From assembly GCA_950097015.1 (NCBI GenBank), contig CATNEN010000011.1:124001-188000 (forward strand): a stretch of DNA of 64,000 nt. Reading direction: 5' to 3'. The notes beneath the pieces are model-generated. The model ran no database searches. It saw only the letters and a program-made list of their open reading frames with translations, and had not been told where the DNA came from. A program made the position numbers and the translations under genes. Source of the DNA: Macrostomum hystrix. Its lineage: Eukaryota; Animalia; Platyhelminthes. Positions 10 through 26,809 of this stretch are shown here, one piece after another (the first letter of the stretch is position 1; every line of letters starts with the position of its first letter).

Positions 10-1524
10 TTGCTGTCATCGTGCGTGCGTCGCCACTTGCGTCTCCACCCTCTGCTGGGGATGTCTGACGCGCCGGCTCGGGCGGACGCCTTGTGCAAGA
101 AGCGATATTCTGCAAAGTATGGGTGCGATAAATGTTACATTCAGACGACTCTTCATCCATCTGGATCTGGCCGAGTATTCAACGTCGTCATCACGCCGGC
201 GATGCTCAATGAAGCTGCTCGATACGGATGCGTGCAAACCGCTGTCCGGTCTATGACCGACACGTGCACTCTCGCTGATCACCATGCAGCACACGTCCAC
301 GACGCGAGGATGGACACGCTGGGTGTTCGCGGACATTCGCCTCTTGGCGAATTAGCCGGCTTTGACTTCGTACGGGCCTGTCCGCCATGCTATCTACACA
401 AGCTGTGTTCTGGCCTTGTGCGCATGATGCTATACCAACTCTTCCTGGTGCGACACGACAAGCCGGACCGCGGCGCCACGAACTGTCCAGATCTGCACAG
501 CCGTATCCCAGAGATTGATGCGCGTCTAGAAAGGCTCCGTTTGCCACGCTGTGTGCAGCGCCGGAGCGTGCGACCTCTTGTGGAACTCCGACACGCCAGA
601 GGACACGAATTGGAAATGTTTATTCTCATCTTTGGGCCTCTGGTTCTTCGTGGCTTTCTCCCCGACGCACACTATCAACATCTGTGTCGTCTGTCATCCT
701 GCGTTTTCTTGATGACACTTGAAGGAGGGCCAAGGAGCGAGTTGCGCCACGTGGAGATCGCTCTACGGCACTTTCATTCAATTCTGCGGCGCATGTACTC
801 CCTAAGGGCTCTAACCTACAACGCACATCAGGTTTGCGCTCACATGGTCCCTAGCGTTCAGCTTGGGGGTCCACTGTATCGGCTGTCAACGGGGCTCTTC
901 GAGACAATGCATTCGCGCCTCCGCCGTCGTGTTCACGGCTTACGGCGAAAGGACGTCGAACTGGTGGGAGCAGTAGAGCGCGAATTCGCCACTTTGCAGA
1001 CGAGGTTGGTCATTCAGGCCAACATCGTGCCTGATCATCCGCAACCGACGACCATGCGTCGTACGGAGACCTGTGAACTCGACGGTGTCGTCTTACGACG
1101 CCCGATCGGCCTCCTAAATGGTTGGCACAGTGCTACACTGCCTTCCGGTTGGCACTTCGACGTGTTCGAGCGACGTCAGGCTGAGTTAGAACCACAGTTT
1201 CGTTGGCGTCTGGAATCGTGCTTTGTCGCAATTGTAGGCCGTCGACCTACCGAATTAATTTTCGGGTGGGTCGAAGGTCTGCAATTAGTGATGGCCGACG
1301 TCCTAGCAGATCTCGTCCTGCTGCGGGTTCTGGAACCAGAGACGGACCCATTGGAAGCTCTGGCTGCTATTCCGTCAACGTCGCAAAATCGAGGCTGTGT
1401 TTGCACATATACGGAGGCTGGCGTGCGACCCTTTTGTCAACCAGCTAGACGGGCATCAGACAATGCGTGTCCGACTTGCCGACATCATTGGCACGTGCAT
1501 TCTGTCGGACACACGTCGCTCTAA
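10..1524 (+). CDS. EnSpm/CACTA-like (CMC superfamily) transposase of the outer element; 5' part probably lies left of the window
   Basis: Motifs DAPARA-x4-K-x5-GCDKC, YLHKLCSGLV, YNAHQVCAH and GPLYRLSTGLFE parallel the two complete transposases at 4127-6259 and 13321-15378. The ORF starts right after a splice-acceptor-like TAATTTCAG at 1-9. Confidence 0.8.
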   Translation: MLSSCVRRHLRLHPLLGMSDAPARADALCKKRYSAKYGCDKCYIQTTLHPSGSGRVFNVVITPAMLNEAARYGCVQTAVRSMTDTCTLADHHAAHVHDARMDTLGVRGHSPLGELAGFDFVRACPPCYLHKLCSGLVRMMLYQLFLVRHDKPDRGATNCPDLHSRIPEIDARLERLRLPRCVQRRSVRPLVELRHARGHELEMFILIFGPLVLRGFLPDAHYQHLCRLSSCVFLMTLEGGPRSELRHVEIALRHFHSILRRMYSLRALTYNAHQVCAHMVPSVQLGGPLYRLSTGLFETMHSRLRRRVHGLRRKDVELVGAVEREFATLQTRLVIQANIVPDHPQPTTMRRTETCELDGVVLRRPIGLLNGWHSATLPSGWHFDVFERRQAELEPQFRWRLESCFVAIVGRRPTELIFGWVEGLQLVMADVLADLVLLRVLEPETDPLEALAAIPSTSQNRGCVCTYTEAGVRPFCQPARRASDNACPTCRHHWHVHSVGHTSL

Positions 1525-2368: not shown

Positions 2369-2758
2369 ACAATGAACCCCCAGTTGACAATGATCCCCCC
2401 GTTGATGATAATCTCCCAGTTGATGATGATCCCCCAGTTGACAATCATCCTCCAGTTGACAATGATCCCCCAGTTGACAATGATCCCCCAGTTGACAATG
2501 ATCCCCCAGTTGACAATGATCCCCCAGTTGACAATGATCCCCCAGTTGATGATGATCCCCCAGTTGATGATGATCACCCAGTTGAAAATGATCCCCCAGT
2601 TGACAATGATCCCCCAGTTGACAATGATCCCGCCCGTTGACAATGATCCCACAGTTGACAATGAACCCCCAGTTCACAATGATCCCCCAGTTGATGATGA
2701 TCCCCCAGTTGACAATGATCCCCCAGTTGACAATGATCCCCCAGTTGACAATGATCCC
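2369..2758 (+). repeat. 18-bp minisatellite (ACAATGATCCCCCAGTTG), about 21-22 copies
   Basis: Directly visible tandem array; it explains the repetitive ORFs (QLGDH, DNDPPV, WGIIVN) in several frames. Confidence 0.95.
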
Positions 2759-2764
2759 AATGAT

Positions 2765-2874
2765 GATTCAAACTCTGGTTTAGCCATGATTCAGACTCTG
2801 GTTTAGCCATGATTCAGACTCTGGTTTAGCCATGATTCAGACTATGGTTTAGCCATGATTCAGACGCTGGTTTA
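2765..2874 (+). repeat. 23-bp tandem repeat GATTCAGACTCTGGTTTAGCCAT, left part
   Basis: About 4.8 copies; the fifth copy is cut by element A and resumes at 9612. Confidence 0.93.
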
Positions 2875-4126
2875 CCCGCTTGGCAAGTTCACGTAAGGCG
2901 AACGTAACATTTTGGTAAATAATTTTTACGAACATTTTACGAAGCAAATTGGGGGGTTTACTAACCTAAAATGGAAAATCATGGGAAGGGATAAACCAGA
3001 AAGTATACATTGTTTCTGACATGTATGTGGTTGATGCTCTAACCATTAATTAAATTTTGGTAATTTTGTTACGTACCATTTACGGAACTAGTTTCCACAA
3101 TTAAACGTAAACTTTCGAAAAAAATAACGAATTACTATTTATCACGGACTATTCATTTAAAAATGCTTTTAAAATACTTACATGTTGCCTAAAGGCACCG
3201 GAATTTAGTCACAATATCAGTGTCATGGATGGTATTTTTTTGAGAAAAGCAAATCGTAAAAAATTCGTACTTTCTTTACTTAAAAAAATCGTACTTTTTG
3301 TTCAGATATTTTACGTTATTAATTTTTAATATATACAGAATGTACTTAAATTGAATCATTTATATTTAAATGGGTTAATTTGGTCTTTTGTAGAAACACC
3401 AGGACTTAATCGAGGAATGACACGTCTTTTTATATGCTATTAAATAAGTTAAGGCTGCCGAAAAATGTTAAACATGGTCGGATAAAAAGTAAAGCTTCGG
3501 TAGTTAAAAAAATTAAGCATAATAAGCAACGTAATTTTGTATCAAATATTATATATTTTTATGTCTTTTAAAAAAGAATTTCAATAATGACATTAATGCG
3601 CAATACTTTATCTTTTTATTTGAAGTTTTATCTAAGCCAAAAATTGGTCTAGAAACTTTTGTTATAGCATGTGTTCCGTGTTCCTCATGTTAATTTAAAT
3701 TTTCAGCTGCGACCACCTCCTTAACTGACTCAACTGTTTTGGGTGTTTTATTAGGTTTGTCAGTGTTATTATATATTATATATATACAACATATTGTCAT
3801 ATATGTGTATAGCATTTTTTTATATTTGTATAAATTAACTTTTTCATCCCAAATTCATTTTCTAATTTTTAAGATCAAATAGTTTGCAATTTTTTTATAT
3901 TTATGTGCTTCTAGGCTTGGTTACAATTTGAAAGTTAAAGTTTTGTAAAGTTATTTAAGACTTTTGTACTAATATCAAGCTAAGTAATACTTAATATACC
4001 TAAGTACCTAAGTAATACTAAATATATATATAATATATATTGCATTTTATCAATTTGCAGCTACGCAGTCATGGAAATGGATGATGATCCTGAGGACTGG
4101 CATATATCAGACTCCTCAATATCAAA

Positions 4127-6259
4127 TTGTCAATTTATGACACAAACAACAGACAAAGCTGCAGGCAAGCCACCTTTTTTGGCAGTTCACCATCATCACC
4201 CAGTGGTTTTTCATCAGATACATTGAGCAGCAATTTAGATCATGAGCATGAAGCTAAAAACCATGAATCATCACTAGACTCAGATGCCAGTTCATGTCCA
4301 AGTTCCTTGCCACTACCAGTTCAGAAGAACAATTACAACCAAAGTGCAGAGCAAGCTTTGGCAGATAGCTTGTCATCTACTTCTAGAGGCGACTTCATGG
4401 CCATGGGCCAACATTGGCAATACTCCTCATCAGAGAGCATTTATGGTTTCTCTTCAGATTTTGAAGCTGATGCTGTATTCCAAGCTGCCTCATTAGAGGC
4501 AGATCTGGTAGAGTACTGGAGAAATTCAAAAATCACTAGGTCAAATATGACAGAGCTACTGAAGGTGCTTCAACGATATCATCCCCATTTGCCAGGTGAT
4601 GCAAGAAGCTTAGAATCGGATTTAGCCGACAACAATGAGAAGTTGCATGAAATTAGGACTGTCATGCCAGGCAAGTACATTCATTTTGGCATTGAGGCTG
4701 GACTACAGTCTATACTGCAGAATTTGAAGCTTGAAGAAAGACAGGTACTGGATTTAATACTCCATATTGATGGTGTCTGCATCTACAAAAGCGTTCAGAA
4801 GGAATTTTGGCCTATATTAGTATCAGTAAAAGGAGTTGACACATCAACTTTTGTTGCTGGCATATATCATGGTTTCACCAAGCCTGATTGTCCTAATGAT
4901 TATCTTGCTGAGTGTGTGAAAGAATTGGAAAGTCTACTAACTAATGGAGTTATTATTGGCAAGAAAAGTTTCATCATTCAGATTTCACACATTGCTTGTG
5001 ACTCAATGGCAAGGGCATTCATAAAAAATATCAAGTATCCAACTGGGTACTTTGCATGTGACCGCTGTGTGACAGATGGAAAGAGTGAAGATGGTAGCAG
5101 GCGTTTCTTGGAGCATGATGCAATTCGCCGTACAGACAAAGATTTTAGAAGCCAAGTACAAGCTGAGCATCATCGTGGGACTTCACACATTGCAACACTA
5201 CCATCTATTGATTCGGTTATGGATTTTCCAAATGACTACATGCATTCGGTCTGCCAAGGTGTGATTCTGAGGATGCTAGAGTTGTTACGAGACAAAGACA
5301 GTGCATTGAGACTCTCTCAAAAAGGACTTCGTGAATTAAATGCCGACATAATTGAGTCCAGAGACTATGTGACGATTGACTTCCAAAGGCGGCCTCAAAG
5401 TCTAAACCTGCTGTCAAAGTGGAAGGCATCAGAGTTGCGATTTTTTGGCTTGTATATTGGCCATTTCATTGTCAGCAAATACAGGCCTGAAGTAGGTGAA
5501 CAACTGCGCTATCTTTCGGTAATAATGCGAATTTTGTGCCATCCAACTCTTTGCCAGACTGCTGGAGCCTATGCACATGATTTGGTGATGTCATTTTTGA
5601 ATAATTGTCAGGCAGAATTTGGTGCCAGGTTTATGACACTCACTGTTCACTCACTGATCCATCTCGCTGAGGACTGTCAGGCAAGAGGTCCTGCCGACAG
5701 CTTTAGTTGCTTTCAATTTGAAAGCTTTTTGCGGTTTGTGGTGAGTTCTATCAAGTCCTCTAAGAAACCATTGGAGCAATTCAGCAACTTTGTTAAAAGA
5801 AATGGCCAGCATCTAGGTCAGGCAAAGCTGCATCTACAGACTTCTGGTGTGTCTCATGCAGCGCATTGTGTCTCAAAGCCACTCGAGGCTGACCAACTAC
5901 AAGGCAAAATTGTTGTTGGATTTGCATGGAAGGACTTTGATCGGCTTTACCGCTGCTTGAAACTCGAGTCTTTTTCTATTGACTGCTCAAATGTGAATCG
6001 CTATGTGCTAACTAAGTCTGATTCAGTACTGATGCTAAGATGTATTGCTGTTCTAGATGACCAATTTTATCTGATTGGCAATGAGCTTTCAAACAAGTGC
6101 CCAGCATTTGAGTCGCCTCTTTCATCTGAAGCAGTGGACATCTACAAAGGAGATCGATTTCAACATCAGCTGAAAGCTATTCCACTCAGCAACCTAAAGT
6201 GCAAGATGCTTCGCTATAAAAACATATTTATTTCCCTGCTTCATACCTACCGTCTGTAG
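4127..6259 (+). CDS. EnSpm/CACTA-like transposase (element A); true start codon uncertain
   Basis: HIDGV..WPIL, CDSMARAFIK..PTGYFACDRC, DYMHSVCQGV, WKASELR, TVHSLIHL and GPADSFSCFQFESF motifs in an uninterrupted 710-aa frame. Confidence 0.88.
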   Translation: MSIYDTNNRQSCRQATFFGSSPSSPSGFSSDTLSSNLDHEHEAKNHESSLDSDASSCPSSLPLPVQKNNYNQSAEQALADSLSSTSRGDFMAMGQHWQYSSSESIYGFSSDFEADAVFQAASLEADLVEYWRNSKITRSNMTELLKVLQRYHPHLPGDARSLESDLADNNEKLHEIRTVMPGKYIHFGIEAGLQSILQNLKLEERQVLDLILHIDGVCIYKSVQKEFWPILVSVKGVDTSTFVAGIYHGFTKPDCPNDYLAECVKELESLLTNGVIIGKKSFIIQISHIACDSMARAFIKNIKYPTGYFACDRCVTDGKSEDGSRRFLEHDAIRRTDKDFRSQVQAEHHRGTSHIATLPSIDSVMDFPNDYMHSVCQGVILRMLELLRDKDSALRLSQKGLRELNADIIESRDYVTIDFQRRPQSLNLLSKWKASELRFFGLYIGHFIVSKYRPEVGEQLRYLSVIMRILCHPTLCQTAGAYAHDLVMSFLNNCQAEFGARFMTLTVHSLIHLAEDCQARGPADSFSCFQFESFLRFVVSSIKSSKKPLEQFSNFVKRNGQHLGQAKLHLQTSGVSHAAHCVSKPLEADQLQGKIVVGFAWKDFDRLYRCLKLESFSIDCSNVNRYVLTKSDSVLMLRCIAVLDDQFYLIGNELSNKCPAFESPLSSEAVDIYKGDRFQHQLKAIPLSNLKCKMLRYKNIFISLLHTYRL

Positions 6260-7064: not shown

Positions 7065-8585
7065 ATGAAGTTCATCATATGCTTTAAGGATGACAAACAA
7101 ATAATTGAGGCCCCTGCCTCTGCTTGCAAATTCGAGGCGCCGTATTCCAACTACCAGTTGGATCAGTGGAGAAAAATTGACCCAGTTGCACTTGTTCAAC
7201 TCAAATGCTCTTACCAAGACCAAGCTTATGACGCCGTCCTTCTACAGGTAGTTGTGGACGACAGAGAGGATGTTTCCCAGACAGTGGATCGTCTGAGATG
7301 CATTCAGAGAGACAAGAACAAATCAGCTCGCTCGATGGTCAAAGTCTGCAAAACACGTGTTTGTGTTGGCAAGCGAACTAACATAGCTGCTCAAGTTTCT
7401 TCAAGCTCAGAAGCGGAGAATGCACCTCCAGCGAAGCTTTCAGCTCAGGAGCCAGGCGAGTCAACAGTGAAAAAGGTACCTCCTCCAGCAGTACCTGACT
7501 ACCTACAAAAGACTACTACTAAAGCGCAGTCCCAGCAAATCAAATCAGCTTGTAGTGCTCCGCACCTGCGCGAGGACAATGCTGGTGGCGAACGTGCTGT
7601 CAATGAAGGGAGCAGATCCAATACTCCGCGGCAGCTGCGCGACGACAATGCTGGTGGCGAACGTGCTGTCAATGAAGGGAGCAGATCCAATACTCCGCGG
7701 CAGCTGCGCGACGACAATGCTGGTGGCGAACGTGCTGTCAATGAAGGGAGCAGATCCAATACTCCGCGGCAGCTGCGCGAGGACAATGCTGGTGGCGAAC
7801 GTGCTGTCAATGAAGGGAGCAGATCCAATACTCCGCGGCAGCTGCGCGAGGACAATGCTGGTGGCGAACGTGCTGTCAATGAAGGGAGCAGATCCAATAC
7901 TCCGCGGCAGCTGTGCGACGACAATGCTGGTGGCGAACGTGCTGCACGCAATGCAGGCAACTGTGCCAGTTGTGGCAGGTCAGCTGTGCGCGACGAGTTG
8001 ATGATGGACTTGCTGGCCACAGTGTTAAGCAATCAGGACAAAATTATGCAGTCGATGCGTTCAGGTCAGGCTGCCCATAGACAGGAAGTCAATGATGAGC
8101 TTCCAAGGGTGCCAGCGTTCAAGCGCGCTAACTCTCGTGAAGATCTAGAAGCAGTACTTGCTGACAAGAGCGCGGCAGTCAGCATCGTCCAGCGCATGGT
8201 TGAGGTGCGACGCCCATCATTTGTTTCTACACTACATCATATGCTCCTGGAAGTGGCCCCTGCTTCCGTTTGGAGCAAGTACAGCCGAGATGGAAAAAGA
8301 AAGAAGCGGTGTGCAAAGGACATTGGAATCGTTGAACTGCTTGTAAAAGCAATTAAGCTGCAAAGCCCCGGAGGTCAGATTAACGAGGTTAAACTTCACA
8401 AGAACGTCCTCAGAAAGCTGGGCGACGCGCTGAAGAGCATGCCAAGCGAGGCCAGACGACACCAGAATCGACAGGAAGGCAACCAGCAGGATGAGCAGGT
8501 TGACCAGGCTGACCAGCAGGATGACCAGTCTTTTGTCGCTGACTCTAATACAAGCAGTGAAGGAGAAATAGAGGAGGAAGACTGA
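7065..8585 (+). CDS. Accessory protein of element A (DUF4806-like C-terminal region, internal 23-aa repeats, acidic tail)
   Basis: ATG preceded by acceptor-like TTTCAG. CASC motif plus coiled-coil, then a helical domain ending WSKYSRDGKRKK...LGDA, typical of accessory ORFs of animal EnSpm-like elements. Domain name is from memory. Confidence 0.65.
   Translation: MKFIICFKDDKQIIEAPASACKFEAPYSNYQLDQWRKIDPVALVQLKCSYQDQAYDAVLLQVVVDDREDVSQTVDRLRCIQRDKNKSARSMVKVCKTRVCVGKRTNIAAQVSSSSEAENAPPAKLSAQEPGESTVKKVPPPAVPDYLQKTTTKAQSQQIKSACSAPHLREDNAGGERAVNEGSRSNTPRQLRDDNAGGERAVNEGSRSNTPRQLRDDNAGGERAVNEGSRSNTPRQLREDNAGGERAVNEGSRSNTPRQLREDNAGGERAVNEGSRSNTPRQLCDDNAGGERAARNAGNCASCGRSAVRDELMMDLLATVLSNQDKIMQSMRSGQAAHRQEVNDELPRVPAFKRANSREDLEAVLADKSAAVSIVQRMVEVRRPSFVSTLHHMLLEVAPASVWSKYSRDGKRKKRCAKDIGIVELLVKAIKLQSPGGQINEVKLHKNVLRKLGDALKSMPSEARRHQNRQEGNQQDEQVDQADQQDDQSFVADSNTSSEGEIEEED
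7563..7944 (+). repeat. 69-bp coding tandem repeat, about 5.5 copies (QLRDDNAGGERAVNEGSRSNTPR)
   Basis: Near-identical units visible in DNA and protein. Confidence 0.95.
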
Positions 8586-11729: not shown

Positions 11730-13346
11730 CTACTCTGCGGCATTAGCACTGTCTTTTTTTGCGAACGGGGCTTTTTTCAACCAACGCTGAACTGCATCGA
11801 TAACAGCTTCTCGACTCGCATCAGGTTGACTTAAACGAGTCAGTTTGAGAATGTAGTCAAAGGTTTTTGGAAATTCATCTCTTAGTGAAGCTTTTTCCGA
11901 AGCCCGATTTGTCCCAGCCCAATTCAGAACCTTTGCCACATTGACTGAAATGGTTGTCTTACATGCCATGTACGTGGCAGATCGCACATCTGAACCACCG
12001 ATCCGACCGATTGAATTCAGAACGACATTTTCATTTTCATTTAGGTGCTCTTCGAACAATTTTAGATCACCAATTGTTCCAATTGGTAAATGGCAAGGAA
12101 GTTGCTGAAGCACGTTTGCAGAACTTATCTGCTGTTTTGAAATGAGATTGCGAAGCATTTGATTGTTTTCTCTAACCAAGACAAACGTCGCACAAAGAAG
12201 ACGGAGGTGACTAGGACCAGTTGTTGCGTCTCTGTTTGCTCCACGTTCTGCCAATAGCTCAGTGGCAATAGATTCAAAGGCCTCATTGCTGATGCCGAAA
12301 TCAGCATTCCTGGCTGCGGAATTTCTGGCGCTTGCACCTCTTGGCGTTAATGTCACGTCTAGAGAGTCTAAGAGCTTCGGTTGAGTTGAAGCAGTAGCCA
12401 CGGTTGTTGCAACGTTGCTAGGCGTCACCCCCGCAGCAGCCACGGTTGTCGCAACGTTGCTAGGCGTCACCCCCGCAGCAGCCACGGTTGTCGCAACGTT
12501 GCTAGGCGTCAACCCCGCAGCAGCCACGGTTGTCGCAACGTTGCTAGGCGTCAACCCCGCAGCAGCCACGGTTGTCGCAACGTTGCTAGGCGTCAACCCC
12601 GCAGCAGCCACGGTTGTCGCAACGTTGCTAGGCGTCACCCCCGCAGCAGCCACGGTTGTCGCAACGTTGCTAGGCGTCACCGCAGCAGCCGACTTGGGTG
12701 TCGTAGTCGCGTCCATGAAAGTGGCAGCTGCAGATCCCAGTGGCAGACTCTGATTGTAAGCGGTCATTACTCTTACATAAAGAGGTGGCGGCACTGGATC
12801 ATCGTCATCACTAGTCTGTTCATATCTTGAGATGCTCGTGTCACTGCTTCTTTTATTCGCAGGATGTTTGTCGATTAACCTGGATTCTGCATTTGATAAG
12901 CACGGGAAAATAATTTCAAGTCAATACATTAGGAAAAATGCATTATAGTATATCCACCTGAAAACATACCTTCAGGACGTCTTCTTTTCCTAGCCAATTC
13001 ATGATCTGAGTCGCTGCAAGAGAGACTTGAAAATTGGTACTTCTTTTCCTTATCGACAGCAGTCGCATATTCATCTGAAGTTAAACGAATTGTTTAAACA
13101 CTTTAAACGATAGCTAAAAAATTGTTTCTTGAAAATAAAAGCAAAGTTACACTTACTACTTCGAAATACGATTTTGAATTCATGATATTCGTCCCAGTTA
13201 GCCATTGGGCTCTTAGAATACATTTTCCGATGGTCATCACTGGCAGGTGGGAAGTAAACTGTGTTAGAATTGGAATCAAGCCAGGTGCTAGGAATTACAG
13301 CAATGGTTCCTTCAGCAAAGCTAACAACAAGCCAATTTTTCTCCAT
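11730..13346 (-). CDS. Spliced accessory gene of element B (exons 13346-13157, 13074-12970, 12886-11730); DUF4806-like
   Basis: GT-AG introns with compatible phases. N-terminus MEKNWLVVSF..AVIPSTW; C-terminal LPIGTIGDLKLFEEHL...LNWAG...VQRWLKKAP. An extra 3' intron is not excluded. Confidence 0.72.
12391..12689 (-). repeat. 42-bp coding tandem repeat, 7 copies (AAAG[V/L]TPSNVATTV)
   Basis: Directly visible in DNA and protein. Confidence 0.95.
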
Positions 13347-15378
13347 GTGAATCTGGAAAGTCAAGGCGAAGAGGAATGATAACATATCCTTTCTTTACAG
13401 GAAAACCGCAAGCCTTGTCCAATATGCAATCATCAGTGACATCGAATGGTGCTCCAAAACAGCCATCTTTGACAAAAAATATTCCTACAGCTGAACTTTT
13501 TATTGGATAGGAATAAAAATCTTCTTTCTGTGTAAATTCCATCACCTTGAACTTAGCAGGCAAAACTTCAGTAACAAGACAGACTTGAAGAGTCCTTGTG
13601 ATAATAAAACAATCTCTGCTGTTAACTCTTATTGTACTCTTGTGAGATGGTACGGCAAGCTCAGCCCTGGACCTTTTTGTCATCAAATATTCACCAGTCC
13701 GATTTCTCAGTTGAGCAATCACTTGATTACCACTGCATAGTCTGTTCTTTAGAATCTGCAAAAAACTTTCAAATCGAAAAGCAGAAAATGCATCTACTGC
13801 ACCAAATTTTTCACAGTCATTTGGCAAATGAATCAGAGAATGAACTATGTTTGAGACAAATCCACGTCCATACAATCCAGATGACTTTGTAACAAATTCT
13901 TTTAGCAGATTGGTTGCAGCAACAACATTTACACTTAGCATTGCAGATTTACCACAAAGAAGATGCATTGCAATGTGAAAGTATAGAAAATGAGGATAAA
14001 TGTCCTTTGGAATACTAGCATCATTTAAAACAATGATTCCATAATAGAGAATAAATGATCGGAATTCAGCTCCTTTCCAATAGCAAAGCTCATTAAGCCC
14101 TCGTGGCTTTCGGCAAAATTCTGATGGGACATGTGATTTTAATGAAACTAAATTGGCAGATAAAGTCTTAATAGCCTGACTTGGCATTCGGACCTTGTAT
14201 GGGCCCTCTTTTATCCAGAAATACATCATCCTTCTCATAACACCAAGATATGCCACATGAAGAACATCAAGTGGAAATGATGCAACCATGTCAATTGAAT
14301 TTAATTCAAGAAATGGTGATAATCCATTGGCTTCATTATGGTGATCCTCATCAATTTGCAGTCGAAATTCAAGATCAGTTCGTAGATCAGCATTAACTTC
14401 ATCAAAGACAATGCAACTTCTTTCCTCACATCGAGTACCTTCTACTTTACATTTGTCACAACTATGATAACCAGTTGGATACTTAGTGCACTTCAATAAG
14501 CACCTAGCTGGTGCATCACAAATTATTGCCTTTGTTAAAATTGCATAATGATGACCACAATAATCAAATCCACTTGAAATTAGATGATTCAATTCTTTAA
14601 TCAGTTCAGAACACAGTTGTTTGGGATTTGGCTTATCTCTTGAATAATAGAACTGGATGACAAAAGGTTCAGATTGTAATTCAGGAACAAAACCAAGAAT
14701 AGGCCAGCACTGGTAGCCAGAACTTTTGAAAAAACTGATTCCATCAATATTTAGGAATAGAGTCAACTGATTAGATTTGGTATGTATGCTTGATAAAGAA
14801 TTATCTATTATAGATTCAATTGCAGACTGTACACCAACATAATAGATATCTTTAGAACAGTAATATGACTTTGCATTAGTGCTATGAGCCAACAATGTTG
14901 ATGCTGTCAATGGAAGATCCAAATTTGGAAAATGTTTAGCATGTAGATGCAGTAAAGACGTAATATGTACTTGACTCACTTTGGCTTCAACAACCCATGC
15001 AGCCAAGTCATCTTTGAAGCTACTTTGGACTTTGTCATAAGACTCTGACCTTTCTGATAAGTCTGATAAAAATTCTTTTGTAATGTCTACAAAATGTTGT
15101 AGCAATGTGTCTTCATGTTCAAAATGGTCAACATCAGAAGTATCTTCCACCTCAATAAGGTGAAGACCATTATTAGAAAACTCTTCTAAGACAAAGTTGC
15201 TCAAAATCTTGTCAATGTCAATATCAATATCTGACAAACAAATGCCACTAGATGATTCATCTTGAAGTGGGTATAAATAGTAAATTTGTTGAGACAATGA
15301 ATTTTCTATATGTTTCTCTTGGTCTTTTATTTTAGCTTCAATTTCATTAATACTTCGCTTTAGTTGCCTTTGGTTCAT
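13321..15378 (-). CDS. EnSpm/CACTA-like transposase (element B), intact 685 aa
   Basis: NIDGISFFKS..CWPILG, CDAPARCLLK..PTGYHSCDKC, DVLHVAYLGV, WKGAEFRSF, IVHSLIHL and FSAFRFESF motifs. Confidence 0.9.
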   Translation of the reverse strand: MNQRQLKRSINEIEAKIKDQEKHIENSLSQQIYYLYPLQDESSSGICLSDIDIDIDKILSNFVLEEFSNNGLHLIEVEDTSDVDHFEHEDTLLQHFVDITKEFLSDLSERSESYDKVQSSFKDDLAAWVVEAKVSQVHITSLLHLHAKHFPNLDLPLTASTLLAHSTNAKSYYCSKDIYYVGVQSAIESIIDNSLSSIHTKSNQLTLFLNIDGISFFKSSGYQCWPILGFVPELQSEPFVIQFYYSRDKPNPKQLCSELIKELNHLISSGFDYCGHHYAILTKAIICDAPARCLLKCTKYPTGYHSCDKCKVEGTRCEERSCIVFDEVNADLRTDLEFRLQIDEDHHNEANGLSPFLELNSIDMVASFPLDVLHVAYLGVMRRMMYFWIKEGPYKVRMPSQAIKTLSANLVSLKSHVPSEFCRKPRGLNELCYWKGAEFRSFILYYGIIVLNDASIPKDIYPHFLYFHIAMHLLCGKSAMLSVNVVAATNLLKEFVTKSSGLYGRGFVSNIVHSLIHLPNDCEKFGAVDAFSAFRFESFLQILKNRLCSGNQVIAQLRNRTGEYLMTKRSRAELAVPSHKSTIRVNSRDCFIITRTLQVCLVTEVLPAKFKVMEFTQKEDFYSYPIKSSAVGIFFVKDGCFGAPFDVTDDCILDKACGFPVKKGYVIIPLRLDFPDSHGEKLACC

Positions 15379-17408: not shown

Positions 17409-18683
17409 TTGGCAAATTGGCAAAATTGGCACAAGGGCACACGGAGTCCGAACCAACCCCCAGTGAGGTGCAGGGCAGCAGTGCACCATCTGCACAAGAA
17501 GACTGCATCACTAGTCACTCCACTACTAGTCCCTCAGACGAGACCTTACAAGCTGGGTTTGAGTAACGTATTCTTCGTGTTCCAGTACGCAGAGTACCAT
17601 GACCGCACAGAAGTAGTAGCCACTTCGGATGGCGCTACTCCAATCGTCGTGTCGTACAAGCGCGGATCGCCACTGCCTCTGTCGGTGGGCAGCGAGGTAG
17701 CCATCGTGACAGCTAAGTCGAATCGATCGAAAGCCAAGCGATGGTTCGGCACGATCGTAAAAGGGCCATTCGATACGAAGGCCGAAGCATCTGGTCAGGC
17801 TGCGCCAACTAACGTGCACGCACCAGCATGCGAGCTGCCTCGACAGTGCGCTTCCTGCCGAAGCCTGATTTTAGAGCTAAATCGCACCAGCAGTCTGGCT
17901 GAGACACTCCGTAAGTACAGCTATATAAGTTTTGTTCATGTATATCATCTTTCCTGACAGTGAAACCGTTTGATCGAGATGGAAACTAAATGGAGGGGAG
18001 GAGCTGCAGGGGAGGCAAAATGAAATATATCAGAAGCACTATTCACGAAAACTGATGCACATTAATTTACGATCCTTCCTCCAATTTATGTTCCACTATA
18101 CATCCGTTTCAACGTAGGTTCCGAGGTTCGCCGAAAAGGAGCCCTCGAGCAAGAATTCCGCACGGAGAACAACTCACTGCGTGAGCACTTGAAAGTAGCC
18201 TCGAAGATGGAAAAGTCTCTTTTACGGCAGCTCAAAACTGACCAGCGCCAAACAGCTCAGCTGAAGAGGCAGGCCAGCGAGTGCAATGCACTCTTAACTC
18301 AGGCCTCGTTGGCGCTGTGTTCCACCATGGTCGGAGGCACGGAGCGCACATCTGACCTTATCGACGGCTGTGCCACGATTGATTCGTTCGACGAGGAGGC
18401 CACTGCCAGTGAGAGAGCGACTGAGGCCGATCCTCCAACTGCCGATTCGACAACGCGCCTGTCCATTGTGCAAACGCGTGCGCTTGTGACCGCCTGTGAC
18501 GCTGCGGCTGCAGCTTCAACATCGGCGTCTGCACCGGGCACATCAAATGTGCCTCTGTCGGACAAGCACCCTTTAATACTGGTAACAGTACAGTCCCGAT
18601 TAGAGCTGCAGACGGCTCTGAGCATATCCAAAGAGGCAGAGAAAGCATGCAGTGTCGACTTAGACGCCGCGCCAACTAAGTAG
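17409..18683 (+). CDS. Spliced accessory gene of the outer element (intron 17911-18117); start uncertain
   Basis: GTAAGT donor at 17911 and TAG acceptor at 18117 join the two ORFs in frame. QCASCR plus coiled-coil parallels NCASCG in the element A accessory protein. Confidence 0.55.
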
Positions 18684-20168: not shown

Positions 20169-20375
20169 CAACCATGGCTTCAAGAGTCTGTCATCGAATG
20201 CACTGTGCCTCTGCAAGACATGAACGACTCCGAACTCAATTCTCTGCTGTCAAAGTTCATACACGAAGTCACTCATGCGGACGGCTTAAAATATCCTGCC
20301 GGTACACTCGTATCTTTGATCGGTGGATTGCAGCAGACTGTCTCGGACGTGCGGCACGTCGACTTCTTTCGATGA
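20169..20375 (+). pseudogene. Crypton-type tyrosine recombinase fragment (DUF3504/ZMYM-like N-terminal part)
   Basis: Frame absent from the ORF track reads PLQDMNDSELNSLLSKFIHEVTHADGLKYPAGTLVSLIGGLQ, matching the recalled LxxFxxEVxxxDGxxYxxxTL signature; premature stop; hairpin GAGCCGAAGGCTC near 19890. Confidence 0.65.
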
Positions 20376-20836
20376 AATCGATTTGTCTGTTGTCAGTTCT
20401 GCTTTAAGTGTATTCTTGTCAATGGTCCAAACTGTTTCGAATAAATCCCTCGAACTGCTAGAATTTAAAGTAAAAAGGACCCGCAATACTACTGAGAGTT
20501 AAATAATCTACCGGTAAAATCCTTTGAAAGTAGTATAAATTTTGTTAAATGGCGCTTGCAGAGGACCTGCTACTGCATGGCTGTGCTTTTGCCTATATAA
20601 TTTTAACCCCTAGCATCTAAACCCCTATGTAAATCAGCATCTGCTAAGGTTTATAATTTTATGACAGTGTCTAGGCAAGATTAAACTAAGTGCTTACCAA
20701 CGATGAAGTAATAGAAGGAATCGATGGTGCTCACACTATCAACTACCCTATGGCTATATACTCGTAGAACGGATAATATTTTAGGGTCTATAAAATATCA
20801 CAGTTAATAAAAAATAATGACCGAGAAAAAATGCGG

Positions 20837-21024
20837 TCAGTCATACCCTAGTGGAGGCGACGGCAGCTGCTCTTGTTTACTCTGAACGTCTGTAGAGACC
20901 TGATTGTTATGATTTAAACAGAAGAACAGATCAACGGCTTCACCAATTAGACTGCTGGCCGCTCGCCTCTCATCCTTGCTGGATATAAGCTTAGCACGAG
21001 TGTCTATCAGGCTCGAATGAAAGT
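20837..21024 (-). CDS. Tandem-CARD gene, exon 5 (terminal, or spliced onward at the GTATGA donor near 20846)
   Basis: ATTTTCAG acceptor, phase 1, frame open for 62 codons to TGA at 20837-20839. Confidence 0.6.
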
Positions 21025-21594
21025 CTGAAAATATGTTACAGTCGGAGACATGTAAAATAATAAACTTTCACTTTAGAAAATATAATCACGGGTCATATCT
21101 AGCTGCCAGTAGATCCTTTTGACAGGTTTCTTATCTTGTTGGTAAGGTGCTCAAAATGTATTCTCCAATAGGATTATTGCCCCTTTAGGTGAGAGCAACA
21201 TTTTTACTTTACAATTCAGACTTTTTGCTGCCTGCCAATGTTTTAATTCCGTCATTGCTTATCAAGTTCCATTTTAGATTCGATAGCTTTTTATAGACCA
21301 AAGCTAAAACTAGGGCTCTCTCCGATCCCATCGCTGGAATATGAAAATATTTGATTCCATCTGCTCCAATAAACCCAGATGTGCAGCAGACAGCAGAAAG
21401 CTATTGCGCGGCGCATCTGAATGCTGCGTACGGCTTCCTTACGCAGCCGTACGCATCCAGACCTTCAAGTCGTGAGTCAGACGCTCTTGGCTAAAACCCC
21501 CGCTATACGACCAGTATGAACGATTGCCCAAGTATGCGATTCCGTTCAGAATATGAAATTAGAGCACATAAAATGCTACAAATTCAATACTCAC

Positions 21595-21729
21595 TGCTTT
21601 CAAAGAACTGTTGAAACGATGGCAGAATCTGATCTAACTGGGACAGCATACCAGCTTGAATCATGGCTGTGATGAATTGGTGTGGCCAATTATGTTTTCT
21701 TATAAGGACTGACAGCAGAGTAACGTCTT
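21595..21729 (-). CDS. Tandem-CARD gene, exon 4 (DVTLLSVLIRKHNWPHQFITAMIQAG...)
   Basis: TTCACAG acceptor, GTGAGT donor, 135 nt, phase 1-1, no stops. Confidence 0.8.
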
Positions 21730-22703
21730 CTGTGAATGTAAATTGTACGCATTATGAGAACACAACAAACCACAGCACAAGAGTAGACAAGCAGTCATAT
21801 ACATGACATTAACCTCAATGAAAGTTAAAACAAATACTGTGGCGCCGTTTAAACATGTTTAACTCTGTTAACTATGTTCTATGTAACTAAACAATCTTCA
21901 TGATCGTTAACCATATCTGCCGTACTTTACTTGTTTGCTGATGTATTTATGATTTAGTGTCCACGTGCGGCACGTTACTCTGGTTTGTTCCTCTATATTT
22001 ACATCATGTTGTGGGCGGCACGTTGCCGCCAGGCATGTCCAATAATAATATAAAGGGCAGAGTGGCCATCAGTAAGTTTGAGTTTTTCGGCTGAGCTATC
22101 TCCTAAACCAAGAGTTCACTTCGTTACAAACGGCACGACAAATACAATAAATACTAAAATTAGAATACAAAAAATCAATGCTGATTTCAATCAAACCAGC
22201 AAGAGACTTCCGGTATTTCGTCGAGACTTATTTCATTCAATACTGAGACGTCAACAAAATTTTCCCAATCTGGGAGCGTCCACTTGTAATGAATTTTTTT
22301 TTGCTTTCACTCTCCATACTGCATCACGCCTCGCATGGGTTTGTATTATCAATTAACAAACATATCACAGCCATAGGTAGAAGCGACATGAAATCGTTCC
22401 TTTTAAGTTGAATTTGAAAAGTGAATTTTCTCTAATATCATACTTTGCTTTACGCTAATTTACATTTTACATTTAGGTTTGCGAAACGAAAAAAGAAGCG
22501 TTGTCGTAGCTGCAAAAATTGACTGGTAAATGTCCTTCTCGTACTTAAGTAAGTAAGTCAAGTCCTTCTCGTACTAGAGTATGCTAAGCTCACGAAGAGC
22601 GAGGTTCTGAGCGATTGGAGTTGTTCGTTGTTAATTAGCTTTGGAGCTAATTAACAAAAATATAACCATAATCAGTTAAAGGAAAATTTATACGCGCACT
22701 TAC

Positions 22704-22922
22704 TTTTGCGGTTACTTTTTGCGAGAGTTGTCATGTCATCTTCGGTCAAAATATTCATTGATAGCAAAGACGCCAGCAAATCATCTGACATCAACGAATC
22801 AAAGCTGATTGGAGATGAATCTGGCCTGTTCTGTTTGTGATAGTACTCCGAAAGGAAGCAGAATAGCATGTGCTCTCTACCACCATCAGGAAGTTTCACA
22901 AGGCCGTTGTTGCAACTAACAC
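22704..22922 (-). CDS. Tandem-CARD gene, exon 3 (...DDLLASLLSMNILTEDDMTTL...)
   Basis: CTTGCAG acceptor, GTAAGT donor, 219 nt, phase 1-1, no stops. Confidence 0.8.
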
Positions 22923-23174
22923 CTGCAAGTAAAAAGATAAACCTTCAAAAAACTTTGGGGCCGAAACGTTCAATAAACGAGTTTATGCACTAACATTTCG
23001 CATGTTAAAAATAAACACACTTCCGTATTTTATTAAATTTCTTATCTTCAAAATCGGCGCGTCTTTTAAGACCTTACAATCGCAATCAAAAAGTTCCCAG
23101 GAAGTACACATATTTACTAGATTAGATATTGTTGTATCAAAGTATTTGTTTCAAAGCGCGCAAAAAGAGTTTGT

Positions 23175-23453
23175 TTACATAAACCAATGTGACGCACAGC
23201 ACAAACAATAGGGGTAAACCAATAAAACAGGAAAAGTTACAAACGCATTTCGAACTGTCGACGAATGTTGTAAGCATGTTGTAAGTTTGACCCCAAACGT
23301 GTCAGCAATCTCGCGGATTGGAGCTCCTCTCTCAATCTCCTCCACCACTTCGCATTGCTCAAATTTTTGTGGGCCATAGGAATTGGAGCACTGAAATCTT
23401 TGAGCCACAGAATCGCGTTTCGAGAATGTCTTTTGGGCTTGTTTTGCTAACAT
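23175..23453 (-). pseudogene. pogo/Tigger-like transposase fragment (N-terminal HTH) in intron 2 of the CARD gene
   Basis: KFEQCEVVEEIERGAPIREIADTFGVKLTT resembles the CENP-B/HTH_psq helix-turn-helix. Confidence 0.55.
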
Positions 23454-24274
23454 TTCAGCTCGTGAATACCATAGACTAACGCATTTTATGACTTTCGAAA
23501 CTATAAAAAATTAAAATTGAAATTAAGAGCCTGCGACTCTGGTAGCGAAGGGCATGTCAGCTTCGTTGAAAATATGTTCGTCTATGGCATTCACGAGCCA
23601 ATAGGAAGGAACGGGGTGACAAGGATGCTAAAAGTGAAAATTGGGCAAATCAATAATAGCTGGGTCAGAATTGTACTCTATTCTATTCTTTCCTTCATGC
23701 ACAATGTTTCTTAAACTGTCAGCACTAGGCCTAGCGAGATAGGAACTTTACAAAAACGTTGATAAATTTTTTGGAGGCAGATCTAATAGCTATTTCGCGA
23801 ATAACTCAATTCAACTGTCACTTTCTAATTATTTAAAAGTGCATTACGAAAAGTTTTATGTAGAATATTTTCATTAACTAATCAGTAGGTAAAGCTACAG
23901 GCTAATTTTATGTCTGATTGGTTGCTATTGTGACAGGCCATCTTCATTTTGGGCACAGATACAGAAAGAGGGCTTAAGTGCAATTGTGCAAGCTGTCCAT
24001 AGGGTTCAACCCCAAGGCTTAGATATAAAGCATTGCGAATGCATGGTGATAAAAAGCCAATGCAGATGAACATTTGTGTATTTTTGTGCATGAAAAATTG
24101 ATCAGGGGTCAGCAAGAACTGCCTCCTTGTTAGCCATCAGTCACATATCACATGGCTGATAAGCAAATGTGATGATGTATGTGAAATATATGTCATAAAT
24201 CAGCAAATGATGTGAAAGTACAAAAAATATATTTTTCTTTATTCTTTGTTGAAAGATACATGAAAAAGACTTAC

Positions 24275-24427
24275 TTATTTGTAGAGCTTGGTAAAACCTT
24301 TTAAACTTGTTTGGCTTCTTAGAGCTATATAAAGCTTCTAGAAGCATGGTAGAAATCCCAACAAGTTGGTCATCTGATTGACTTTCCAAAACTAGCCCTT
24401 GCATAAATTTCAATTCCTGGAGAATAC
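24275..24427 (-). CDS. Tandem-CARD gene, exon 2 (ILQELKF...LLEALYSSKKPNKFKRFYQALQI)
   Basis: TTTGTAG acceptor, GTAAGT donor, 153 nt, phase 1-1, no stops. Confidence 0.8.
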
Positions 24428-25807
24428 CTACAAAGTTTTAGGGTTTAAATGAAAAATTTTCATGACAACAAACAGTCAGAACAACAAATGTCGAAAGTAG
24501 CATTGGCTAAAGTAAATAAATAAATATTTTTGCTAATATACTTAGTAGACTTCTACTGGGTTGACAGTCATTTCATCTGCCCCCTTTTTGTTTGCCAATA
24601 TACAATATAATTGTTTCGGCTGCCAATATATTATATAGTCCATTCATATACTAATGTAGGCATTTGTTGGAATAACTAATTATATCACCAAGCTTCATAC
24701 TGAAATGTAATGCAAACATCTTATATTTTTTAATTTTAATGCTAGGGTTTTTCTGAAAGTTCTAGGGCTAATAAGAAGCCTATAAATACACAAAGCCAGA
24801 ACCAACATTTCTATTTCTAAATATTGCCAATTGTCACATTTGACATTGGTTAAACTGAAGGGCATGCTGCCTAGCTGTAACAACAGCATGGCAAATAACA
24901 CAATCATCCATGAAAGCTAAAGCTAAAGCCATGAAGACAAAAATATTCTTCTTAAGACAGTTTCAAAATTGTCAAAATATGATAAGATTCTATGAATAAT
25001 ATGCTTTTTAACAAAAAAAATTATATTTTTCTATCACTAAGAACATTTATCATCATAAATTCTCTTTCTGTAATAAAAAATGTTTTATACTAGAATACTA
25101 TGTCTTTACAGTTCTCATTATTAAAAAAAATAGTCATTTCATCTGCCGGCAGACAAAGTGACCCCACATTTCCTACTGCTCATTTCAAATTTTGAATTTT
25201 AAGCAATTTGCTTGTATAACTACTAGCTAAAAATTGTGCAAAAATTATAATTTTTAGTAGAGTAAGACACAAAGAGAGTGAGATCATATCCCCATGAAAT
25301 AAAGATATGGAGAAAATGTGTTAAAAGTGCCTCTTTTAGGACAACTAATAATATGGGCCTAAAGGGAGTTATTCTAATTCAGTAGAGTTTATAGACAGAA
25401 TAAGTAGACAATACAGCAGAATGAGAAAAAGTGATAAGTCTTGTTACATGCAAATAAAAATAACTAAAGTTTAGTAGAAAGGAAAATGGAGGCAAAGAAA
25501 AAGTTCTAGAAAAGCAACCATTTTTAACAGTTTGAGCTATGATCAAAATCAACTTACAATATTAGGAATTTAGTCAGTTAGCCACTATTTTTTAAAAGTA
25601 AAAATGTTACAAAAATGCATATATAATTTGCAACTATAAATATTGAGACAACTAACTAGGGGCCTAAGAAGTAAGAATAATATAAGCAAGTGAGGGACAA
25701 AAAGGCATCTCATGGTCATCAGGACAGTAGGACAGGAGAGGGACAATGTCACAATTCAATCATGTAAATAAAGCTTTTAAAATCATTTTGATTTTAATAC
25801 CGCCTAC

Positions 25808-25925
25808 CTGCTTCGAAACATTCGTCGATATGATGACTAGGAATGTTAAGAACAATGTGCAACTTTTGTTCTAATTTAGCACTAGAAACTTCGATAAGAA
25901 GTTGGTAATAAACTTCTTGTTCCAT
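25808..25925 (-). CDS. Tandem-CARD gene, exon 1 (MEQEVYYQ...ECFEA)
   Basis: ATG at 25925, 118 nt, donor GTAGGC, phase 1 compatible with exon 2. Confidence 0.7.
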
Positions 25926-26809
25926 GCTAGACATTGCGCGTTGTTTGCGTGTTGCGGTCAGTTTAGGAGCAATGCCTATGTATTAAAATAGATTCAGTTT
26001 TCGCTTCTAAAATTTCCAAGAAATTAGTCACAAGTGAAGTCAAAATGAGAGTGAAATCTAAACAATAAATGTACGTTGAGTTCGCTAGTGTACAATAATA
26101 AAAAGAATTCATAATAACTCTGCGTTAAAAAAATAATTATTTACTGCTCTTTGTAGTCGTCATTTTAACACAGTTAACTTTTAACATATTTGATGTGCAA
26201 CAGAAGTAATGACTAAATTTTGTTATAATGTTAAGTATTACGGATACAGATACGCAAAAATGGTGTACATATTGGTAATTTTGTGTTGCGTGTAAACGCT
26301 CGTGTTTCTTGTGTTGACAAACTAATTTTGCAAGTCTTTGTTCTGCTCTTTAAGAACTTTTACTATTTTTCCTCGAATTTTACAGACATTAGCATGGAGT
26401 GCAGTCTAAATGCGCTTTATTACGCGTGCTTCGACTGCTTCGCAAAAACGACACAACGTATAATTTTTTAAGTTAAAATTCTTTTCGCTTCTTTTCAAAC
26501 CCCTCGACGATGAACTTCACACGTTCATCTGACATATCTATTCTCATAAATTCCTAACGATTTTTGGGATCGAGATTAGTCGACTTCCGATAATGGTATT
26601 TGGTGAACAATCTGTCTTCCGCAGCGTAACATAGAAATACCTTATCCACTTAGCTAGCTCCTCCACCTCGGCAAATGCGAAGTCCAGCTTCAAATTATTC
26701 GCGGCTAGGCATGCTGTTAGACGTGATAATATCGCTCTTGAACCTTTCAGTAATGACTTTGTCTATGGTCAAAGGACAATTCTATTCCTGTGTGATATTT
26801 TGACTTAGG

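Follow-up and report, generated by a model that had tools for sequence, protein, structure and literature searches.

The locus described here lies on contig C11 (CATNEN010000011.1) of the flatworm Macrostomum hystrix, in a 64,000-nt stretch (C11:124001–188000) that is termed the window. Five exons on its minus strand give a stop-free frame for a short protein. Is this a complete small gene, or the 5′ part of a gene for a RIG-I-like receptor (RLR) whose remaining exons are found elsewhere? A first-pass annotation, made from the nt sequence alone, offered both readings: a short adaptor or decoy with two CARDs, or the 5′ end of an RLR with helicase exons beyond an intron of >20 kb filled with transposons. 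The second is supported here. The five exons appear to be the 5′ part of a macrostomid RLR gene encoding divergent tandem CARDs, with the helicase and C-terminal domain (CTD) exons at C11:112994–104835, beyond a 31.8-kb intron. This explanation is given a probability of about 0.7, and a single RLR gene extending across the gap is similarly likely. The locus belongs to the known RLR family, and its orthologs are already in GenBank as hypothetical proteins.

The five-exon gene model

Exon coordinates are in window numbering unless a contig prefix is given. A minus-strand reading of positions 20500–26300, with translation exon by exon, yields five exons exactly as the first-pass annotation had modelled them, including the canonical splice sites and three internal exons of phase 1-1 (153, 219 and 135 nt). 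Homology searches and domain scans were performed exon by exon or with natural orthologs; exons were joined only to determine length, stops and junction codons. The main reference sequence is Macrostomum lignano PAA75803.1 (BOX15_Mlig004869g3; UniRef A0A267FPZ7; here P0152), a chain of 1080 aa labelled "hypothetical protein" or "RNA helicase". The exons are listed below with their tblastn matches to P0152; CARD helices are predicted, and a slash marks an exon boundary.

25934–25808, minus strand: exon 1, 127 nt (118 nt from the second ATG at 25925), start codon and CARD1 helices 1–3; donor G/GTAGGC, phase 1; P0152 residues 1–42, 40% identity, E = 0.004; aligns with exon 1 of the paralogs on C7 and at C11:2.0 Mb
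24427–24275, minus strand: exon 2, 153 nt, phase 1-1, CARD1 helices 4–6; P0152 residues 45–93, 49% identity, E = 1e-8; alignable with the paralogs
22922–22704, minus strand: exon 3, 219 nt, phase 1-1, link between the CARDs and CARD2 helices 1–3; P0152 residues 99–159, 54% identity, E = 3e-13; own-genome paralog at C7:8490034–8490219
21729–21595, minus strand: exon 4, 135 nt, phase 1-1, CARD2 helices 4–6, includes LLSVLIRKHNWPHQFITAMIQAG; P0152 residues 167–212, 57% identity, E = 1e-10
21024–20837, minus strand: exon 5, 188 nt as first drawn, reading into TGA at 20839–20837 unless a donor is used, a helical extension behind CARD2, then the first part of the linker; P0152 residues 211–250, 52% identity, E = 2e-6
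Candidate donors of exon 5 (last exon base), minus strand: 20944, TTG/GTGAAG, phase 1; 20900, CAG/GTCTCT, phase 0; 20881, AGA/GTAAAC, phase 1; 20847, AGG/GTATGA, phase 2

All four introns are of the GT...AG type, with donors that start gtaggc, gtaagt, gtaagt and gtgagt, and the junction codons are GGT, AGT, AAA and AAC. The open frame has 273 sense codons and a stop. Counted from the second ATG, which aligns with the Met of the M. lignano ortholog, the chain is 270 aa, in agreement with the stop-free frame of about 270 aa proposed initially. At the local G+C content of 36%, the chance of a random frame of 270 codons staying open is ~5e-9. The matches of the five exons to P0152 are in order and on a single strand; thus the frame is conserved at the protein level. 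In addition, the exon 5 acceptor (cag/AC) is identical in position and phase in the C7 paralog, and the exon-4 motif LLSVLIRKHNWPHQFITAMIQAG is found at only three loci genome-wide.

Helicase and C-terminal domain exons downstream of the window

No helicase exon is present within the 64-kb window, as had been noted initially. A scan of the sequence to the left, suggested at the same time, did reveal such exons. When the M. hystrix genome was searched with the helicase exon of the C7 paralog, a match with 59% identity was found at C11:112798–112998 (minus strand), and another at C11:2006133. The C11:112798–112998 exon is 31.8 kb downstream of exon 5 and 11 kb past the left edge of the window.

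A tblastn search with P0152 against C11:94001–188000 gave 13 collinear matches, all on the minus strand. Residues 1–250 fall on exons 1–5 (40%–57% identity) and residues 370–1080 on eight further exons at C11:112953–104838 (47%–81% identity). GT-AG sites allow in-frame joining at every junction between these eight exons (C11:112994–104835), and the frame closes with a TGA at C11:104837–104835.

The open reading frames in C11:104001–114000 display APTGSGKT, FDECHH, GLTASPG, QSRGRGRA and a CxxC...CxxC C-terminal domain (CLEC...CRHC). Core motifs I (PTGSGKT), II (DECH) and VI (QxxGRxR) of the superfamily 2 (SF2) helicases are present on C11:112994–108846, where identity to P0152 is 55%–81%. The exons of the C-terminal domain are 47%–60% identical to P0152 residues 906–1080, and a C-terminal domain of the RIG-I type with four zinc-binding cysteines is found at this locus. 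A six-frame scan gave a RIG-I_C-RD (PF11648) match at C11:105400–105612 with 21.7 bits; this is below the cut-off of 25.6, the domain being divided between two exons. As judged from these motifs, the eight downstream exons encode Hel1, Hel2i/Hel2 and a zinc-binding CTD of the RIG-I type.

Thus the helicase, Hel2 and CTD exons are on the same strand as the five window exons, and in the M. lignano ortholog the two parts belong to a single chain.

Orthologs and paralogs

A large protein search with the C11 helicase exon gave M. lignano proteins and one protein from a Logan contig as best matches (78%, 77%, 70% and 60% identity). In these proteins the helicase match begins at residues 312–363, behind an N-terminus that can be aligned with the window exons. 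The aligned N-terminal stretches include EIVYQLLIEVS, QLLGVSTMLLEALHSSK, DDLLASLLTTNTLTE and LLSLLIGKPDWTQRLIAAMIQCG, and the hydrophobic-core positions are conserved between the window exons and the orthologs. The Logan protein, P0003, has 1026 aa and is encoded on a 3.4-kb contig, so that it is intronless and resembles a transcript. N-terminus, helicase and CTD are combined in this one molecule, which passes the Pfam thresholds for ResIII, DEAD, Helicase_C and RIG-I_C-RD (PF11648, 48.4 bits). A word search with exon 3 gave no candidate, but this is a weak test, longer proteins being outside the length window of that search.

Paralogs show the same arrangement. Own-genome searches with exons 3 and 4 detected an exon-3/exon-4-like pair, 116 bp apart, at C7:8490219–8489796. 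Directly downstream on the same strand is an exon with LQMRAYQLELA...APTGSGKT; it encodes ...LQMRAYQLELARSGLAGRNCMVVAPTGSGKT, a helicase start of the RLR/Dicer type. An own-genome scan with the Pfam RIG-I C-terminal domain gave matches at C7:8483571, C11:1999628 and C11:105400. Together with the helicase-exon matches, these indicate three RLR loci in the genome. At the C11:2.0 Mb paralog, CARD-like exons are likewise situated upstream of the helicase, and in both paralogs the same N-terminal exons directly precede it. Canonical in-frame splice sites were not found for every junction of the two paralogs.

From P0152, P0001, P0153 (another M. lignano ortholog), the transcript-like P0003 and the two paralogs, all 13 exons would be expected to be joined in one mRNA in M. 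hystrix.

Relationship of the N-terminal domains to CARDs

The first-pass annotation had called both N-terminal domains CARDs. The assignment is supported by profile and structure comparisons; Pfam scores stay below threshold. Exon 4 matches Pfam CARD_2 (PF16739) at profile positions 56–84 of 93 with E = 0.0018 and 18.7 bits, short of the gathering threshold of 28.2 bits. This is the region to which an early remark on a resemblance to the MAVS CARD had pointed. A likeness of exon 2 to the second CARD of RIG-I, proposed at the same time, is not upheld, and exon 2 corresponds to the second half of CARD1.

A profile comparison was made with hhalign. The query consisted of natural Macrostomum proteins with the window and C7 exons as separate rows; the template was 26 N-termini of RLRs of other phyla, the Macrostomum paralog P0022 being left out. 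The match has a probability of 93.7% (P = 1.9e-7, score 51.4, 136 columns). The score is far above those of shuffled and reversed controls, the maximum among 25 column-shuffled queries being 11.7. Both domains are collinear with the N-termini of the other RLRs. CARD2 alone reaches 80%–90%, and the CARD2 part of the match coincides with the Pfam-annotated CARD_2 segment of the RLRs of other phyla.

AlphaFold2 was applied to P0153 (47-row alignment) and gave a pLDDT of 81–97 over residues 1–260. The model has six helices in residues 2–95, six to seven in residues 110–213, and then three more, followed by a disordered linker (266–340) and Hel1. The helices listed for each exon above follow from this model by way of the tblastn alignment to P0152. 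A Foldseek search with this model has two duck RIG-I entries with tandem CARDs as top matches (E = 2.6e-12, 548–617 columns), whereas entries without CARDs align over only ~260 columns. By VIA, 4a2w_A is aligned over model residues 3–587 with an rmsd of 13 Å, a match of the whole protein and not of the CARDs only. The VIA-wide fold search does not test the CARD part because the 50 matches listed are taken up by helicases. Among named ESM-Atlas clusters, CARD families come nearest (0.84 and 0.77), a lead only at such scores.

Sequence searches of the PDB with exon 4, and with an exon-4 profile of the three paralogs, placed designed armadillo repeats at the top. Here a short AxIxAGxL..LL motif is summed over many repeats, and the matches were rejected as spurious because no single stretch is significant.

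These sequence and model comparisons suggest that exons 1 and 2 form a first CARD and exons 3 and 4 a second, both very divergent; the fold is well supported but not proven. They point to N-terminal tandem CARDs like those of RIG-I and MDA5, with CARD1 weak and the Pfam thresholds unreached. Exon 5 encodes a short, helical extension followed by the first part of the disordered linker.

The 31.8-kb gap

The sequence between exon 5 and the helicase exon has the following components within the window.

20540–20836, minus strand: 3′ flank of exon 5, ~300 nt, single copy and AT-rich; native 5′ end of intron 5, or 3′ untranslated region if the gene ends here
1–20539: window part of the gap, transposon-derived sequence between exon 5 and C11:112994
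20205–20372, plus strand: remnant of QRICH1/Crypton/ZMYM type, 56-aa open reading frame, Pfam QRICH1 E = 5e-7; 470 nt downstream of exon 5 and on the opposite strand
4127–6259 (plus), 7065–8585 (plus), 13321–15378 (minus) and 10–1524 (plus): large open reading frames of 504–710 aa in the transposon nest

The large open reading frames show no significant Pfam match, only weak ones to Plavaka transposase and DUF4218 (E ~0.01–0.02). To the left of the window there are a long interspersed nuclear element (LINE) with endonuclease and reverse transcriptase, and a long terminal repeat (LTR) element with integrase. The ends of the latter (C11:113334–113534 and C11:117459–117659, 200 bp each) flank the integrase open reading frame and are 100% identical; its insertion is therefore very recent. 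The LTR family has many copies with 87%–100% identity elsewhere in the genome, and is probably a very young, active retrotransposon.

In an own-genome DNA search of the sequence downstream of exon 5, repeats were found only for 20380–20540. The ~335 nt before the C11 helicase exon are likewise single copy and AT-rich. Both flanks are closed in frame, with transposon termini just past them. The single-copy, AT-rich flanks thus fit an old, ordinary intron that was later filled by transposons rather than a broken exon. Large transposon-filled introns are ordinary and tolerated in animal genes.

Exon 5 can be joined in frame to the helicase exon from donor 20881 or 20944 (phase 1) to catag/AA at C11:112994, or from 20900 (phase 0) to ctgcag/ATG. 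Such a donor/acceptor pair is expected by chance, because there are several candidates on each side. A small intermediate exon between exon 5 and the helicase exon is possible. The 15 codons before the ATG of the helicase exon (EEDEGADSRESRTLQ) contain no stop and can be aligned with the end of the linker in the C7 paralog and in M. lignano.

With the M. lignano linker as query, tblastn gave one weak match at 18326–18544 (minus strand; A/S-rich; E = 0.01 without composition correction). It was judged to be due to chance, since it is antisense to a longer open reading frame in transposon-like sequence.

Alternative explanations

Several observations weigh against a single gene with tandem CARDs. 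At the exon 5 end, the best-looking donor (AGG/GTATGA, phase 2) is directly followed by the in-frame stop and fits no acceptor phase of the helicase exon, such that the in-frame joins need weaker donors. Nothing in the gap corresponds to the Q/S-rich linker of ~120 residues that the M. lignano protein carries. Both paralogs carry the linker and motif I on one exon with no intron at this position, and the intron is therefore confined to the present gene lineage. Just before RVYQEELA, the helicase exon contains its own ATG, placed like the start of CARD-less RLRs, and the 31.8-kb gap includes the very recent LTR insertion. The stop and out-of-phase donor, the ATG and the gap would agree with a gene that has been split, both halves of which are intact. 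Growth of the transposons would have uncoupled them, giving a stand-alone 273-aa protein with two CARDs that ends at the TGA at 20837, a constitutive signaller or decoy, and a CARD-less, LGP2-like helicase whose translation begins at an ATG of its own (MRVYQEELA...). Expression of the helicase might then rely on a promoter contributed by a transposon, or on trans-splicing at the C11:112994 acceptor. The two products could come from separate genes or be regulated isoforms, one terminated by the 20837 stop and the other begun at the helicase ATG or by trans-splicing to C11:112994. A split of either kind is considered unlikely, and the short adaptor or decoy of the first-pass annotation is less favoured, though it may exist as an isoform or split-gene product. 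The orthologs and paralogs all unite CARDs and helicase in one protein, and the open codons ahead of the helicase ATG align with the linker end of the C7 and M. lignano proteins, as described above. There is also an out-of-frame ATG between the acceptor and the helicase ATG. The intron-like flanks, and the ordinary occurrence of such introns in animals, suggest a tolerated intron. Were the CARD exons instead a decaying relic, recently cut off by the transposon nest and neither expressed nor selected, with the helicase part or nothing being functional, the intact frames might reflect too little time for decay, given the very young insertions in the gap (the identical LTR pair). This is highly improbable: all five exons have open frames and canonical splice sites, the identity to M. 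lignano is 40%–57% and the hydrophobic core is kept. Furthermore the gap also holds older, degraded remnants, i.e. the 56-aa QRICH1 fragment and the open reading frames with weak transposase matches.

The nature of the N-terminal domains is a separate matter, and they could be some other all-helical module preceding an RLR helicase. No exon and no ortholog reaches threshold with the Pfam models CARD, CARD_2, Death and DED. In the exon-by-exon Pfam scan of the window gene and both paralogs, the sub-threshold exon 4 match is the sole one to CARD_2, the paralog exons giving none at E ≤ 10; the full-length P0001, P0003 and P0004 have no Pfam CARD at E ≤ 1. CARD1 alone is weak in hhalign (P = 0.003), and with a template of six sequences the hhalign probability is <20%. 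Apart from the spurious armadillo sums, the PDB sequence search gives only the MDA5 2CARD (7dni_A) at E = 0.79. Still, a non-CARD module is regarded as very improbable. Against the 26 RLR N-termini, hhalign finds both domains collinear at a score far above the controls; the number and length of the helices and the two-domain layout in the AlphaFold2 model fit a pair of CARDs; and the top Foldseek matches, the CARD-containing duck RIG-I entries, are aligned across the whole model. The domains also occupy the same position in the protein as the tandem CARDs in RLRs of other phyla.

Proposed mode of action and comparison with known systems

For a single RLR gene, the steps of a mechanism can be drawn by homology from RLR biology. 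The intron between exon 5 and the helicase exon would have been ordinary at first and later bloated by nested transposons. In the joined protein, the CTD and helicase would bind viral double-stranded or 5′-phosphorylated RNA, and ATP-dependent closure around the RNA would free the tandem CARDs. The freed CARDs may then oligomerize and recruit a CARD-bearing adaptor by CARD–CARD assembly, leading to antiviral signalling. The CARD-bearing signalling partner is an inference, and so is the choice among the donors that could end exon 5.

Genome scans with CARD_2 and the exon-4 profile did not detect a MAVS-like gene, which means little because the CARDs are so divergent. The only matches are the three RLR loci and one CARD-caspase gene.

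CARD-bearing RLRs are known in molluscs, echinoderms, hemichordates and cnidarians. Vertebrate RIG-I (DDX58) and MDA5 (IFIH1) and the invertebrate CARD-RLRs (P0060 and P0067 of Haliotis, P0046 of Lytechinus, P0008 of Saccoglossus) share the arrangement proposed here: two CARDs, an SF2 DECH helicase with an insertion domain and a zinc-binding CTD. Overall identity to RIG-I/MDA5 and to the mollusc, echinoderm and hemichordate RLRs is ~27%–32%; the M. hystrix CARDs are too divergent for Pfam. The M. lignano ortholog PAA75803.1 is closer, with the same domain order, collinearity with the 13 exons and identities of 40%–57% (CARD exons) and 47%–81% (helicase and CTD). It differs in a Q/S-rich disordered linker that is ~120 residues longer than here, and it has no CARD annotation.

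RIG-I and MDA5 have N-terminal tandem CARDs, whereas LGP2 (DHX58) is without them. If started at its own ATG, the downstream half would resemble a CARD-less RLR, with its N-terminus immediately ahead of the YQ.ELA motif. The orthologs place the CARD module in the same protein, however, and an LGP2-like product would arise only if the gene is split. The likeness to MAVS consists of the CARD_2-type sequence in exon 4. MAVS has a single N-terminal CARD, a proline-rich region and a C-terminal membrane anchor, whereas here there are two CARDs and exon 5 has no long hydrophobic stretch. The locus is not assigned to MAVS because it has two CARD-like domains and no hydrophobic tail, and is orthologous to the receptors and not to the adaptor.

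RLRs of M. lignano are included in a published RLR tree (PMC8476169). In another flatworm, Dugesia japonica, an "atypical RIG-I", the one characterized planarian RLR, has been linked to immune responses and is described as working without traditional CARDs (Li et al. 2019, Dev Comp Immunol 91:72; as cited in PMC6652118). By that published description, rather than by the planarian sequence, it is set apart from the macrostomid RLRs with their tandem CARD-like module.

Recognition of the joined locus corrects what would be two wrong annotations, an orphan 270-aa open reading frame and a "CARD-less" helicase. Macrostomid RLRs appear to retain tandem CARDs as a signalling head, which escapes standard domain scans, and basal flatworms may signal via CARD–CARD assemblies. 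As no MAVS-like gene turned up, this raises the question of the partner. A 32-kb transposon-filled intron located exactly between the signalling and sensing modules is also a test case for effects on isoforms and gene splitting. In mammals, free tandem CARDs are a constitutively signalling RIG-I fragment. If the M. hystrix gene were in fact split, it would be a natural experiment that separates sensor from signaller.

Additional observations

The C7 exon 3′/4′ junction (piece positions 1480–1500 and 1391–1395) has no GT-AG pair that gives the ..SERK/MPALL.. of the ortholog. AGCAA is followed by a single GT, in phase 2, which does not fit acceptors of phase 1 or 0. The true junction may lie elsewhere or use a non-canonical site, or the assembly may be in error here.

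The introns of the C7 and C11:2.0 Mb RLR genes are full of long tandem repeats with units of ~20–40 bp. The repeat stretches are at ~2040–2460 of the C7 piece, and at ~520–1110, 1400–2990 and 3270–4040 of the C11:2.0 Mb piece. These repeats create very long spurious open reading frames on both strands, one of them 624 aa.

A 92-aa open reading frame within intron 2 of the window gene (23178–23453, minus strand) weakly matches HTH_23 (helix-turn-helix, E = 0.017) and is probably a piece of the DNA-binding domain of a transposase.

The CARD-caspase gene is located at C30:3915933–3919199 (piece open reading frames 1498–2118 and 2413–3183, both plus strand) and gave the sole full-length CARD_2/CARD-like match when the genome was scanned in six frames. 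A CARD is followed here by a caspase p20-like open reading frame (caspase-2/9 type), and the second open reading frame enters a long SEISGMRS tandem repeat.

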